From the NCBI GenBank assembly GCA_000708835.1, contig DF237340.1, positions 24,091 to 88,090 of the forward strand: 64,000 nucleotides of DNA. The letters are read 5' to 3'. The notes below the pieces were generated by a model. That model saw nothing but the letters and a program-made list of their open reading frames with translations. It made no database searches and was not told the origin of the DNA. The position numbers and the translations under genes are program-made. Shown here one piece after another: positions 16,701 to 61,700 of the stretch; position 1 is the stretch's first letter, and each line of letters begins with the position of its first letter. This stretch comes from Klebsormidium nitens (taxonomy: Eukaryota; Plantae; Klebsormidiophyceae).

Positions 16701-19700
16701 TCCACATGACGCGGCACGGAAGGTGTGCCTCTGCGCAGCTTATGCGGTCGGTGGCATGTTCCACCCGTTTGAATATGAGTGCCTCCGTCGGAAGTGAAGG
16801 GTAAAAGTTTAGCGCTGATTACGCATCTGCGCATCCTCTTCTGAGAGCGCAACCTTTTAACTACCTAATCTGGAATGGGAAAGCATGATTCTTTGTCTGG
16901 CTTCCAAACACGGCCGGTTTCATTCATGATGCTCAACCGCATCATCCAAGGTACTTGTCATGGCCAGCTTGAGAGTTTCGCTTGTAAGCCACCTCGCTCT
17001 TGCAACTTTGTGGGCAATTGCGGCAGCAGGCGATATGGAGCAAGAAGCAAGGTGACACTTTCGGACAAGCCGGTACAGTTGGCCTGGGGCACTCAAAAAA
17101 CAAAAGGGGGAATCGAGGCTGCCACTTTGCAAGCATCCCCTCGCAAGTTGCTATTCAAAGCTCGCTGTGCAAGGTGCAGTTTAGCAGATTTGCTGGGGCT
17201 GAGCCGAAGGATCAGAGGCAGATTCTTTTAGTGGCATTACATGTTCGCTCTTAGATGCTACGAGAGGGGAAACACATGGCGTCAGCGGCCGCCCGTCAGC
17301 GTTCTGGACCGGACAACATCTTTGTTGCGATGCTAGAGGCACCAATCGCGACAATCCCGGCTCGTCATTGCCAAACAGGTCGTCACGGCTCGGAAGCCCG
17401 GCGGATAGAGATGCTTGAAGCCACAAGCAAACAATTGGGGAGGAACGCTGGCGTCGGTTTCCGAGGGCCTAGTTTGAGGAGCTGCGTCAAGCATCACCTC
17501 CTCATGACAGCGCAGTCCTCCTCGCCTCGGGTTTCAAGTATTGAAGATCTGCCATAGCTGTCCAAGATGCTTATACCGTGTGGTGGGTTCCTGGCGCATT
17601 CACTAATGTGGCAGTACCAGATTTTCACGGGGATCAGTATCAGGGAACATGACACGCAAAACAAAGCGCACCATTGAGAACACAATCCAAGAAGAGAAGC
17701 GCAAACATAGGGTTCAAATACAATAAAGAGAGGATCGCTGAGGATGGCATACTGGATGGTGGTAAGCATAGCCCATCAATATCAACATTGACGCAAAACC
17801 GTTTCGCACCAGTTGTTTAGAAAAACCAACCCAATGGACCAGGACTTAAAGGGACTACTTGTCACGTGCAAATCGGACGTCTTTTGGGCGCCTCGGGATT
17901 AGCTATGTTGCGGCGTCGCACTGCACGAGCACTCAAATCCTCATCGGCCTTGCTGATGTCAGCAGCTTAACACAATCGAGCCGCTTAAGAGGTTCTTATG
18001 TAATATTGCAACTCTGGGGCAAACGCAGATACGCAAGGACTTTCGGAAGCAGGAAGGAACTCGGTACCGGGGAAAGCCCGTCTTCAAAATGATAGGCAAG
18101 AGCGGGAAAGTGGCACCGCCTTTGGGACGTGTAGTTGGGCACAGAATCGGCTCATACATCGCGACAAACTGTAAGATATTATAGTCCCCATCGTACGACA
18201 GCGTTTTACTAACGAGATAAGGTCGGCAAGCTCAACATGCATTTTGTATGCAGTAAGGTACTTCCTAGCGTCCTTACTGCAACGGCAACAACAGCACCTT
18301 GGATGTCAACCCCATATGCAGTCTGGCGCCGACGCACCATTATAATGTCCTCATTGGTCCAGCCGTGCGTGAGCCTTTTTCCCTGAACCAAGATGTAAGT
18401 GCTACCTTCGCAAACGTACGTAGAGAAAGCTAAGTGGTAGCTACTTCGGGACTCTGAAGAGCGGCAGATACACATTGATAGTCGCTGAATGCGGAATAGC
18501 AAGCGGAAGTACCGTTGAGATATCAAAATGTTTCCAAAGCTTGCTGAGATGCAGTTATTGCAGATTCGTAAAGCAAGTAGGCACCGACCTCCATCGAAGG
18601 GCACCGATGTGACGTATCTGCTTGCGAAGCAACAGAGCAACCAAGTCTGCGACCGGTTGCGGACCGCATGCTTGGTGGAACTCCCAACAAATCACCACTT
18701 TACGATGCAAACCACGGAGATGGCAAGATGCACTGCCACGATCCCTAAATCCAAATAAGGGACAAAGCGGCAAATCTGCCATTAGCTGCCGCTAGATTTC
18801 TGAGGATGATAAGGAGCTCGTGCAAGAGGAGCTGGGTAATGGACGTTACGTGGGTTGCAGCTTTAGTGATAAAAATAAAGATGTTCAGCCTCGGATCTGC
18901 GCTTGCCCGAATGACGCATGCACGGGTGCGCCATGATGTAGTAGCAATCATCACGGGCGGCTCACCGAGCACAACCTGGATTAGAAAATAGCCCAGAGAG
19001 GGTGCACACAAGAAAGGAAATGGTACGCCAGTCTTCCATGGTCGATTAAGGTCAAGCCTGATGCTCCTTCACCCGGAGTTGGCAACTCCGAGAAACATTT
19101 ATGTAGCACAATCACGATACCTTTCACGGAAGACGGTGACGAAGAGTACTTCGAACCGCGTAGATTGAAAACCTTAGTTGCTGGAATGAGTAGAGTTCGG
19201 CTCATGCTCACAACCCAAGCACATCTGACGCTTCAGAGCGCCAGAGATCATCCTGCGTCCTTGCCATACAGACCGTTTTGGCACTGCCTTTGACGCAAAG
19301 TTTGAAGCAGACGGGAAGTAAATGAAAAAGCCACGTGGACCATATGCAATAGTTTCGCGCCCAGAAGCCTGTCCTTTACGACATCGCACAGAGAGCACAC
19401 CTGAGAACAATCGCTGACAACGGCTATCCGTAGCGAGCTATCAGATACTAATAGCCAACAACTTTGGACGCTCCCGCTTTCTCCAGTCAAACATTCGTAA
19501 CACCTCGGATGCCTCGGACTGCGCAACATACGACGGTTGGAGGTGGTTGCCTCCGGCGAGCATCGTCATGGGCTCTAAGCATATGAGACAGGGTGAGAGT
19601 TGCTCCAGATTTCACCAAGTAAACCTCAAAGCACGTCTAGCTGTCAGTCGGCAAAACATTAACTTCGTAGAGATTGGCCTTAAGCTCTATTGAGGAGACG

Positions 19701-58700: not shown

Positions 58701-61700
58701 TTGCAGGAGGAAGCAAGTTCACTTTAGGAAGAAAGATGCCTTCGGATAAAAGTCCGGCAGATATGCCAGATGGGGATGTACCGATTGCAAAGAAGAAAGC
58801 GACATGTGAAACACGGCAGTAACCGTTCAGCCCTGAATAGGTATAGTTGCACAGGAACAGCAGTTATGAAGATCCTGCGATGTATGTTTCTCTAGGGATC
58901 GCTTAAAAGGAATTATGCGCTTTCCAGATCCCGAAATGAGTGAACACTCGATGTCGAAGTTGCAAGGCAATGACAAAGTTGTCGATCCATCCTCTTCGAC
59001 GCAATGAGGACAGAAGAAACCGCCAAAGGCGACAGAGCTGCGCATCTCCAAAACTGCGCAGGTTTTGGCAGCGAGCAGAGACAAAACAGGAAGAACGAGG
59101 GAGATCGAGCCAACCCCGCCACGCAAGCTTGATTGACAAAGGGCAATCAAAATCTCTTCTGTTAGAGATCGAGACGGAGCAACCATTCGCATAACGAGCA
59201 GAGCAAGACTTTCTGCAGATTTTCCATCGACTGTCAAGCTTTCAGCAATCCTCATTTTTTGGCATCGAGTACAACCAAAACGGTGGTGCACTTTGGCATC
59301 AGTGCACATCGTCCTCATTGCCAGCAAAAGCTTGAACAAATCAAACACCCTTAACATGCATCGACGCGTCATTCGTTGTCAAGGTTTGCCCGCATAATTT
59401 TCAAATAAACCCACCAGGACGGGCCAAGATGTTATTACTTACACTCGAAAGCAGATTGTGAAGAAACGAAGCAAGAGCTTTTCCAGCAAGATATGTGAAC
59501 CTGCAAAGGGACGGGTCCATGCGAAAGCACAAAAAGCTTATCAGCTCTGTAAGGAGCAGCACTACTGAGAAGTCGTCCGTGACTCATATAGTGCCTTAAA
59601 GAAGCAGGTGCTACAAGGGGCACCAGACACACCCTTCATGAGCACGGAAAAGATCGTAGACTGCCAAACATGCTCAATAAGTCAAAAGGCCGCTCAATTG
59701 TTGTTCACAAGCGGCTTGAAGACGAGAGTAGAGCACGCCTAGTCGTAGACTGCCCTAGGGCGACAGGGCGCTCGACAACTACGACCACTTTGACAAGTCC
59801 ATAACCCAGCGTCACAACTCGGGGACTATTGCTTGCCACGAGTGTTGTGGCATGACCTCAGAGTTCGGGCGTCCGGAGAAGCCCACCAATCAAAGCCGAA
59901 GAGGCTTCACTGAGTATGGTGGATGGGACAAAAAGCATCAGGGACAAGATACGACAGAGTCGCTGGGGAAGAATCTGAGACCCCGCTTCCGTGATAGACA
60001 GAGCTAAGAAGATGGGAATGACCGGCAGCTCATTCACTTCCGTATGGTTGCGGCTAAGGGGCACCAGACAATCAAGACGCATGAGGTGGTGCCAGAAGAT
60101 CCTTCTGGTGGATGTATTCCTTCACTCATGGCCGCATCCTCCGCTCAAGAAAAGTGAAAGGGCCTGGTTCCGGGACAAAGTAAAAACGCAAAAATGCTCT
60201 CGTCTCCTACCCGATGTCTCGTAAGAATAGTCGGCCCTCACCTGATAACTTCGGAGAGGTACACCGAGTCCGCGCTGCTGACCGACGCGCTCCTCCCTAC
60301 CAGGATCTCGATCTCCTGCGACGTGCTCCGCTGCCGCTCCAGTTGTTGCTGCGGGCATGGTTACATGGACGTTGAAAGCACATGAACAGTAAGTCAAAAG
60401 GGGGCCCAACAGACAGCTGCTTATTGGGCAATTATTGCTGCAAGATCTGCTGTGGTGGTAGTTATGTCCATGTTGGAATTTTGCTATATGCAGGAATTCT
60501 TGCATGAAGGGCCCAACAAGCACCCTACGAAAGCTCAGCTTACGCACGCCCATACATAGTCCGTGAACTGGTGTGGCAGAGGACCCATCGAGTGCTGTAG
60601 AGTTCTACAGCTCTTTCCCCTAGCTTGCAGCCCGATTTTTAAGCAATGCATTGGTCATATAGCATTCAGAATGAAGAGAACATTCTGGTAGGCCCAAGCT
60701 GTTGACAAGGACACAGCTTCTGAGATGAGCCAAGGCAAGATTCATACAATGAGCGGGTGTTGACAAAGGAGTCGAGATCTTTGTAAAACAGTTTTTCAAG
60801 CTGGTTCATACACTCTTGAATGTCCAGATTGCCATACTAGCCTAAGTCCATTTCCTACCCCTGCCTGTTTCTCCCCCTGCTCTTCTAGGGACTCCTGTAT
60901 GTCTGCCTACTTCTACAGTCCCCTACGGAAAGCTTACTTTGTTGACTGGTACTCTAACTTCGATCTGCGATACGCCCTCACTTTTGTAGGGAGCTTTTGT
61001 GTACAAGTGTCCGGATTATGGGTACTTTGAATGGGAAAAGGTACAAGTTTGGATGATCACACCTTGAGCTCCGACATCTCAGCCAGGGGCTTGACGACCG
61101 CCTTCCAGGACTGCTTCTCAGCGAACGCGGTCGCGAAGGATGGATGTTGGCCAGTGCACAGATGTCAAGGAAGACATTGTAACAAAGAGTTGTGAAGGAA
61201 GAGCTTCTGATCAACAGAATTGATGTGCTGGCGAGTCAAAGTGGACGCATGTAAAGGGCACGGACGAGCTCAAGCATGAGAAGTGCGGTGGCGATAAGGA
61301 TATAGTTCCCCTCGGATGTCCTCCAGAAAAATCTGTTGGGGTTCCAGATCTGCGGTTTCAAGGATCACCAGGTAGTCCTCTGAAACACCCGGCAAGGGTC
61401 GACCCTGCAAGAATGAGTTTGTTGTCAGAACTTTTGTGGGCTACACGATAGAAGCTTAGCACTACTGCTTTTGTGATGGCGTTTGGGGATTTTGCAAGCC
61501 TTGACTCCACTGGGACAGCATTTTCCACATCGCTGTGAGTTCTTAAGTTCAGTTTGATGATGGTACAAGCAGTGCTAGCTTTTCCGCTAGGACATACACT
61601 GGACTGCAGTGGAAGGAGTTCGGTCTGCTGACAGACCTCCTCTCTGAAAAAAGAAACAACATACACCTCTGACATCTGCAGGTTGACGTATTTTGGTATG

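Follow-up and report, generated by a model that had tools for sequence, protein, structure and literature searches.

A syntenic tandem array of candidate orphan box C/D-like kink-turn RNA modules in the alga Klebsormidium nitens

Introduction

Box C/D small nucleolar ribonucleoproteins are kink-turn ribonucleoproteins (RNPs) built with Snu13/15.5K, Nop56, Nop58, and fibrillarin, and the kink-turn in the 5' stem-loop of U4 small nuclear RNA (snRNA) binds Snu13/15.5K and then Prp31. In mammals, SNORD115, SNORD116, and SNORD113/114 form tandem clusters of orphan small nucleolar RNAs (snoRNAs) within noncoding host transcripts. To our knowledge, it is mainly in mammalian imprinted loci that orphan box C/D-like RNAs have been found in large one-directional arrays, and what these arrays do there is still debated. 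Here, we describe an array of predicted kink-turn RNA modules in a 64,000-nucleotide (nt) stretch of the alga Klebsormidium nitens (contig DF237340.1, positions 24,091 to 88,090; hereafter the window, numbered from its first letter). A 42-kb part of the window that has no recognizable coding sequence contains this structured-RNA array. As in the SNORD clusters, tens of same-strand copies lie about 1 to 2.5 kb apart in a long noncoding stretch with diverging spacers, and the RNAs seem to be orphan, with a conserved small-RNA part and growth by duplication. Unlike the SNORD clusters, the array belongs to an algal lineage, its copies are far more diverged, and its boxes are noncanonical.

The defining features of a box C/D snoRNA are a terminal stem, the boxes RUGAUGA and CUGA, and a kink-turn that contains G-A pairs (PMC5122169). 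The snoRNA clusters of plants and green algae, described in rice, Arabidopsis, and Chlamydomonas, lie on one strand, share a common precursor, and reflect local duplication; they are compact, with few genes placed hundreds of bases apart, and mostly contain guides with known targets (PMC5122169). In contrast, the locus described here holds about 44 modules of one family across 42 kb.

A strand-polarized motif is part of a structured module

The 12-mer CTCGTCATTGGC occurs seven times in the window, each time on the plus strand (at 25,244, 31,810, 31,965, 37,192, 39,541, 46,532, and 52,689), as compared to 0.01 occurrences in shuffled sequences, and variants of the motif include GCCGATGA and GCCTATGA. 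Its core, TCATNGGY, is found 50 times in the window when both strands are counted, while 14.05 +/- 3.5 copies are expected. Of these cores, 44 fall on the plus strand from 17,941 to 57,105; the same span contains three on the minus strand, and the other 19 kb account for the remaining three. An earlier reading of the same DNA, made from its letters without database searches (the sequence-only reading), had described a repeated, strand-polarized motif with very few reversed or outlying copies and with mostly unalignable flanks. Our counts confirmed the seven exact 12-mers and, with 44, the roughly 40 plus-strand cores of that reading as well as the scarcity of the others, and the core positions listed in that reading are the same sites, counted from 4 nt upstream. 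The flanks are indeed mostly unalignable, as self-BLAST returned one 480-bp duplicate pair and a few blocks of 60 to 70% identity. That reading had overlooked that conservation extends over a structured unit of about 70 nt.

In the minus-strand sense, this unit is a module of 63 to 101 nt, and the motif, which is part of it, makes up the front half of the box C/D-like kink-turn fold. The 5' part begins with a stem whose last bases are mostly GCC; a single variable base, AUGA-(C)-GA, and about 12 nt follow. The middle is occupied by a hairpin of 5 to 10 bp, typically UGRUGC/GCAYCA, followed by about 15 to 20 nt, and the 3' part consists of C-N-GA, 0 or 1 base, and a second stem strand that is complementary to the first. 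As minus-strand RNA, GCCAAUGACGAG comprises the 5' stem and the half of a kink-turn that resembles box C. The box C-like element (N-AUGA-N-GA, mostly AAUGACGA) and the box D-like element (C-N-GA) are placed directly inside the terminal stem, and two variable single-stranded stretches flank the conserved hairpin between the boxes. The conserved AUGA...GA accounts for the tandem G-A pairs, while the variable N noted in the sequence-only reading is predicted to be loop position L1 of the kink-turn. The motif gives this fold on the minus strand only.

The terminal stems are 3 to 8 bp long and vary in sequence among the copies with their complementarity kept, as in the compensating pairs GAGGTGCC/GGCACCTC and TGCGTGCC/GGCACGCA and, further, GATGCC/GGCGTC, GCTGGC/GCCAGA, and GTCGCT/GGCGAC. 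Stems of at least 4 bp beside the GA were present at 17 of the 44 sites versus two to four in shifted controls, for which the downstream half was taken from elsewhere; for stems of at least 6 bp, the corresponding numbers were 6 of 44 and 0 to 1. When the stability of the internal region was compared to that of shuffled sequences, the mean z was only -0.64. Thus, the central hairpin alone is supported in the interior of the module, and no long helix is.

We built a first covariance model from 18 clean modules. It returned 34 matches at E < 0.05, all on the minus strand and between 16,896 and 57,108; at E < 10, 65 of 69 matches were on this strand. The second-round model detected 44 matches at E < 0.05. 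These were restricted to the minus strand of the interval 16,896-59,325, with none elsewhere in the window, and 55 of the 58 matches of this model at E < 1 were on the minus strand.

Covariation points to a box C/D-type kink-turn

In the alignment of 34 sequences from the window, both helices covary. Paired bases filled 74% of the cells as compared to 31 to 44% in controls with slid structures, and the covariation score of 0.344 exceeded that of the slid controls (at most 0.154) and was reached by none of 500 shuffles. Modules of a distant relative (see below), which were not used for the model, gave 83.8% paired cells versus 31 to 48% and a score of 0.389 versus at most 0.107. The terminal stem alone was paired in 79.8% of the cells in the window and in 83.3% in the relative, the slid whole-structure controls being at 31 to 48%.

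To tabulate the boxes, we pooled 92 distinct modules from three genomes. The box C-like element contains AUGA in 76 of the 92, and its positions 6 and 7 are G and A in 74 modules each, while a GA abuts the 3' stem in 78. The first position of box D is usually C, paired with the G of 4b, and the box D sequences include CCGA (13), CGGA (10), CUGA (10), and UGGA (8). The 4b:4n pair covaries (G-C in 33 modules, A-U in 9, G-U in 3, and A-C in 3; Fisher P = 2.3e-5), as does 3b:3n (P = 0.03). A compensatory switch at 4b:4n is seen between paralogs, with ACA...UGGA at 27,524-27,593 and ACG...CGGA at 37,140-37,206. The G-A/A-G positions of the kink-turn were conserved in a test at the level of sequence. 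Judged from these alignments, the fold is that of a box C/D kink-turn, except that the U-U position appears to be free and is often a C-G pair. The motif, which matched no class that the sequence-only reading recognized, belongs to the box C/D kink-turn class.

Like box C/D snoRNAs, the modules are about 60 to 100 nt long, have a terminal stem that directly flanks the C- and D-like boxes, and keep the tandem G-A pairs together with the 4b:4n G-C pair; like the polycistronic and intronic box C/D snoRNAs of plants and algae, they have no promoter of their own. They differ from box C/D snoRNAs at the U-U position (3b:3n), which is variable and mostly C-G, C-C, or C-U, and in having CUGA in a minority of copies. 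In place of recognizable C' and D' boxes, they carry the conserved Watson-Crick hairpin. In box C/D snoRNAs, an antisense element of at least 10 nt, complementary to ribosomal RNA (rRNA) or snRNA, ends upstream of box D or D'; the antisense region of the modules is not conserved between orthologs, and they show no excess complementarity to rRNA and no Rfam match, as detailed below. The core GCC-AAUGA-GG...CC-GA-GGC, present in several modules (for example, at 17,887-17,951 and at 3739-3814 of contig L119 from the distant relative), is almost what we take to be the kink-turn core of U4 snRNA; the Rfam model of U4 gave no match. U4 has a pentaloop after a 2-bp noncanonical (NC) stem and is an snRNA of about 145 nt with U6-pairing regions and an Sm site, none of which is present in the modules.

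The array lies between the same genes in related genomes

At its high-coordinate end, the array adjoins a minus-strand PH-domain gene (60,237-62,560), which starts near 62,550 and whose coding sequence (CDS) ends with a C-terminal peptide and a stop codon near 60,237, both kept in a relative. On the low-coordinate side, a minus-strand gene for a Vps34-like PI3-kinase (4500-13,980) has its own N-terminal C2 exon at 13,441-13,980. Because the PH-domain stop precedes the array and the first coding exon of the Vps34-like gene comes after it, the array lies outside both CDSs. The giant intron to which the sequence-only reading had confined the motif is not supported, given the same conserved stop and C2 exon; the interval 16,896-59,325 could be an intron in a 5' untranslated region (UTR), a 3' extension, or a noncoding gene of its own.

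Using the PH-domain exon, we found three relatives. The protein is 86% identical on two metagenome contigs and 96% identical on a 73-kb contig from a public run, while the third relative, 91% identical, is represented in a transcriptome by a complete open reading frame (ORF) of 227 amino acids (aa). The DNA around the gene was retrieved for the first two. The ORF at 51,126-51,989 on the plus strand of the array, used as a query for relatives, gave no match. In the distant relative, exons alone can be aligned to the window, yet the PH-domain gene is followed over at least 15 kb by 14 modules (E < 0.05), which share its strand. The closer relative, whose contig reaches the far end of the array, carries 38 modules over 36 kb, all on the strand of the PH-domain gene and none in 25 kb of flanks, and its Vps34 gene comes after the array. 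The arrays of the window and of the closer relative are broadly collinear at 57 to 70% identity and are rearranged in the middle.

We then compared identity by segment in 12 orthologous module pairs. The 5' and 3' stems were 79% and 83% identical, boxes C and D 88% and 81%, and the two hairpin arms 79% and 85%, with 63% in the hairpin loop. Identity was 67% in the 5' single strand, 56% in the 3' single strand, and 56% in the 150-nt flanks. The sequence-only reading had proposed a comparison of motif and flanks between paralogous segments; made here between orthologs, it gave 79 to 88% for boxes, stems, and hairpin arms versus 56% for the flanks. The comparison indicates that the module scaffold is under purifying selection and that the site of the would-be box D guide evolves like spacer. 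Since selection is seen on the scaffold and not on the would-be antisense element, the modules appear to be orphan.

Interpretation of the array and alternative explanations

We favor the reading, which we consider rather probable, that the locus is a syntenic tandem array whose orphan, box C/D-like kink-turn RNA modules are either processed out of a long minus-strand transcript or function inside it. The array would be transcribed as a long minus-strand precursor, in which each kink-turn would recruit a protein of the L7Ae/Snu13 type and possibly further box C/D core proteins. The resulting RNP would either shield the RNA of about 70 nt from exonucleases, as for polycistronic and intronic snoRNAs, or stay as a bead on the long RNA. 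The array would expand via segmental duplication of blocks of about 4 to 5 kb and would lose modules by decay. What the data show is the fold and its strand, its restriction to this locus within the window and the contigs of the relatives, its synteny, and the selection on it in three genomes; transcription, processing, and protein partners of the modules are inferred. No motif common to the module surroundings was found within 100 nt on either side; this suggests that the units lack promoters and terminators of their own, which fits processing from a long precursor. The T-rich composition of the module strand, seen in the window and in a relative, also speaks for the favored reading. The modules are probably not guides of rRNA methylation.

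Several results weigh against the favored reading. At gathering thresholds, the sole Rfam match was a transfer RNA (tRNA) outside the array, and at E values up to 10, Rfam gave three matches at chance level, with none on the modules and no snoRNA family. By means of a conserved 18S 5' probe, we retrieved eukaryotic ribosomal DNA (rDNA) loci from metagenomes and compared the module interiors with 12 of them. The longest complementarities to rRNA were 10 to 12 nt, with one of 14 nt, the same as for reversed, complemented, and reverse-complemented controls; the comparison covered these 12 diverse rDNAs and neither the rRNA nor the snRNAs of the host. In four putative-RNA runs (X5, X8, X10, and X11), no RNA contig was found on 49,500-55,499, although assembled contigs tend to lose RNAs of about 70 nt. 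The boxes also depart from the canonical form, as 53 of the 92 modules have C and only 10 have U at position 5 of box C, and as CUGA serves as box D in only 10 of 63. The GA is missing in 14 of the 92 modules, many of which look decayed, and part of the array may thus consist of pseudogenes. Last, counting G-U versus A-C as a test of strand gave a weak result: the ratio was 43:35 when every cell was counted and 21:11 when the count was limited to positions with Watson-Crick pairs on either side. With this mild excess of G-U, the strand assignment rests mainly on the G-A signature.

A bolder reading, which we advance tentatively, is that the modules represent an undescribed class of kink-turn RNA and not a snoRNA family, with about 40 tandem Snu13/L7Ae-binding units, a family-specific hairpin, and no antisense pairing; with the same reserve, and jointly with this reading, we suggest that the two flanking genes have enclosed the array ever since at least three algal genomes diverged. 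Possible roles would then be those of a long RNA that titrates proteins or scaffolds RNPs, or of small RNPs with a new partner protein, which might recognize both the hairpin and the C-G that replaces the U-U pair.

It is also conceivable, although we think it unlikely, that the modules are never excised and act in cis as regularly spaced binding sites for kink-turn proteins on a long RNA. The host RNA would be an independent long noncoding RNA, an intron of 43 kb in the 5' UTR of the Vps34-like gene, or an extended 3' part of the PH-domain transcript, and the sites could package, stabilize, or localize it. This is the closest surviving form of the polar cis-signal, or RNA-binding site, proposed in the sequence-only reading: a strand-polar signal at the level of RNA does exist, as half of a kink-turn on the minus-strand RNA, while the giant intron that it was supposed to mark is not supported. 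A function in cis would agree with conservation of the scaffold alone and with a 3' single strand that evolves like the flanks, as well as with the lack of rRNA targets among the 12 rDNAs and with a copy number and orientation kept in three genomes. It would agree, too, with the strand composition, since long-term transcription of the whole stretch fits the A>T skew of the plus strand, which is 0.10-0.22 in the array span versus -0.07 to 0.065 outside; the module (minus) strand is T-rich in the window and in the distant relative. However, it is by terminal stems beside C/D-like boxes that the ends of excised snoRNAs are defined, no long transcript was seen as an RNA contig on the interval examined in the four runs, and the PH-domain CDS stops before the array.

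Mobile-element ends, DNA boxes, and micro-exons are poorly supported. For the motif to mark head-to-tail junctions of nonautonomous rolling-circle (Helitron-like) or other mobile elements, with conserved 3' and 5' ends and unrelated interiors, one can point to the plus strand, where a hairpin lies about 12 nt ahead of the junction-like ...CTCG|TCAT..., and to the unalignable interiors. Helitron ends have TC at the 5' side and CTRR at the 3' side, with a hairpin 10-12 nt ahead of the 3' end, and the copies are dispersed. We regard this reading as very improbable, because the pairing crosses the supposed junction and covaries, for which element ends have no reason, and because the junction is CTCG|TCAT and not the Helitron CTRR. 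The single orientation at one syntenic locus in three genomes, the collinear orthologs, and the lack of a transposase or Rep ORF in a Pfam search of the array ORFs speak against it as well. The covarying stems and NC-stem pairs also go unexplained under two proposals of the sequence-only reading, the junction scar of a duplication process and a DNA box of the CCAAT/TGACG type. As a composite NF-Y and bZIP site kept in each unit of a decayed array, for example as a unit promoter, the latter has the merit that both consensus cores fall within GCCAATGACG. Nevertheless, it does not account for the hairpin or the compensatory changes, nor for the presence, 50-60 nt away, of a conserved GA and a complementary stem; furthermore, the variable N falls inside the CCAAT core (GCCNATGA), and CCAAT is destroyed in 40 of the 92 modules, so that we find this explanation barely plausible. 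Least credible of all is a coding reading, in which the minus strand would carry short, repeated exons with an xPMTS motif and the variable positions would reflect codon wobble. In one frame, these positions (R CCN ATG ACG) do fall at third codon positions, but most copies are flanked on either side by stop codons only a few codons away, there is no Pfam match, and the variable N is explained as L1 of the kink-turn.

As an array of orphan box C/D-like modules, the locus has three useful properties. It is an independent, syntenic algal array in which selection is measurable on the kink-turn and the hairpin and absent from the antisense region; the U-U position of its kink-turn is systematically altered; and an algal host should be easier to handle in experiments than a mammal. 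Thus, it could help in studying the role of such arrays where their RNAs do not guide modifications.

Inventory of the modules

The 44 modules with E < 0.05 occupy 16,896-59,325 on the minus strand with a mean spacing of about 1 kb. Bit scores are those of the second-round model, and an ortholog is a counterpart in the relative. At the low-coordinate end, the module at 16,896-16,968 (37.7 bits) has a stem in which GGC/GCC is swapped with respect to the consensus, and its ortholog is found at 62,120-62,190 of the relative's contig. A long, weak module at 17,275-17,375 (16.3 bits) is followed by those at 17,887-17,951 (17.7 bits; ortholog) and 18,293-18,361 (15.5 bits), the latter with AA replacing GA in box D, and by 19,196-19,268 (23.6 bits), 19,508-19,576 (27.5 bits; ortholog), and 22,432-22,500 (30.4 bits). 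A canonical AUGAUGA box C is present at 22,656-22,735 (20.2 bits). The module at 25,190-25,258 (37.7 bits) is a young duplicate of that at 46,478-46,546 (also 37.7 bits).

Next come 26,916-26,989 (32.3 bits) and 27,524-27,593 (35.9 bits), which has ACA...UGGA with A-U at 4b:4n and is a paralog of the module at 37,140-37,206. They are followed by 28,166-28,235 (32.7 bits), 30,412-30,477 (20.1 bits), 30,602-30,667 (31.4 bits), and 31,742-31,824 (26.2 bits), and by 31,914-31,979 (32.9 bits), whose terminal stem of 8 bp is TGCGTGCC/GGCACGCA. The module at 32,123-32,190 scores 38.4 bits, and the one at 32,472-32,539 (17.3 bits) is a paralog of 27,524-27,593. Further modules lie at 34,589-34,660 (39.2 bits; ortholog) and 36,587-36,674 (25.0 bits). 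Just before an assembly gap within the array (37,253-37,827, a run of N with a collinear paralogous block on both sides), the module at 37,140-37,206 (36.4 bits) has ACG...CGGA with G-C at 4b:4n.

Beyond the gap, modules are placed at 38,293-38,376 (28.7 bits), 39,156-39,218 (34.0 bits), and 39,487-39,555 (35.7 bits; ortholog 74% identical), and another with an 8-bp stem, GAGGTGCC/GGCACCTC, lies at 39,844-39,913 (38.2 bits). Those at 40,244-40,313 (18.4 bits), 40,998-41,069 (37.5 bits), and 41,959-42,024 (33.2 bits; ortholog) precede one of the U-U type with AUGAU...CUGA at 43,364-43,437 (22.4 bits; ortholog). The series continues with 43,464-43,532 (30.9 bits; ortholog), 45,357-45,426 (40.5 bits), and the duplicate at 46,478-46,546. 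An AUGAUGA box with the stem GTCGCT/GGCGAC is found at 47,179-47,247 (20.4 bits) and a CUGA box D at 47,532-47,605 (28.6 bits). After 49,566-49,636 (31.1 bits; ortholog), the module at 49,985-50,056 has the top score (47.7 bits, E = 2e-12) and an ortholog. The remaining modules are 52,633-52,703 (41.9 bits), 54,057-54,129 (34.1 bits), the weak 54,706-54,777 (15.7 bits), 54,888-54,950 (24.8 bits), 55,313-55,397 (16.3 bits), 56,817-56,879 (15.6 bits), 57,042-57,108 (41.6 bits), which has an internal hairpin of 10 bp, and 59,258-59,325 (17.5 bits), the first of the array in the sense of the minus strand.

Duplication history and the assembly gap

Higher-order blocks with a period of about 4.7-4.95 kb and 60-70% identity, each with several modules, were found at 26.3-28.9, 31.3-33.1, 36.0-37.9, and 39.3-40.4 kb. 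The distant relative has blocks of about 4.0 kb (L119, 9.1-10.6 and 13.2-14.6 kb), and identity over both genomes' blocks is 60-75%. Thus, the array seems to have grown by segmental duplication, block-wise and independently in each lineage. Decay is visible in the paralogs at 27,170-27,241 and 32,472-32,539, which score far below their partners. In the duplicate pair 25,190/46,478, the module is free of substitutions, and the adjacent stretch of about 80 nt is almost equally clean; because of this clean stretch, the pair is weak evidence. Within L119 598-1584 of the distant relative, modules 616-691, 1046-1117, and 1488-1570 are part of a tandem repeat of about 440 bp with 76% identity, a local amplification much younger than any in the window.

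The run of N at 37,253-37,827 lies between modules of the same orientation, at 37,140-37,206 and 38,293-38,376. Paralogous block 32,147-32,706 can be aligned to the sequence before the gap with an offset of 4710 and to that after it with an offset of 5233 (a change of 523 nt), the second alignment being weak (E = 0.004). This suggests that both sides belong to one collinear array and that the true gap may be tens of bases, below the written 575 nt. The region being noncoding, a reading frame across the gap is irrelevant.

Coding potential and minor observations

A giant ORF and a tandem satellite were rejected as explanations of the array span, as it contains no ORF longer than 290 aa and no long-period tandem or satellite-type repeat. 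No Pfam domain was found in 10 ORFs within the array and at its low-coordinate edge. The stretch is present in DNA runs of one study. Two public runs labeled as RNA, X8 and X11, contain 2-3% of the sampled 31-mers of 47,500-57,499; a few hundred bases in 47,500-49,499 or 55,500-57,499 may be transcribed or may match a transcript from elsewhere.

Between the end of the array and the start of the Vps34 gene, a 137-nt block (15,528-15,664) is 79% identical to the closer relative (contig 63,742-63,878), far above its noncoding surroundings, and may represent an exon of a 5' UTR, a promoter element, or a further small RNA. A tRNA-Gln(UUG) gene (63,355-63,427, plus strand) is located upstream of the oppositely oriented PH-domain gene, in a region that can be aligned in both relatives (L118 1810-2048 and the Logan contig). 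Near the other end of the window, a Ty3/gypsy pol fragment with RNase H, integrase zinc-binding, and integrase core domains (144-2313, plus strand) is followed by an ORF with a PHD finger; just 3' of the fragment, two direct repeats of 133 bp (2388-2519 and 3084-3216) are 97% identical. Last, at 29,641-29,726, an A28 run on the plus strand is followed by 2.2 copies of a 28-nt tandem repeat.

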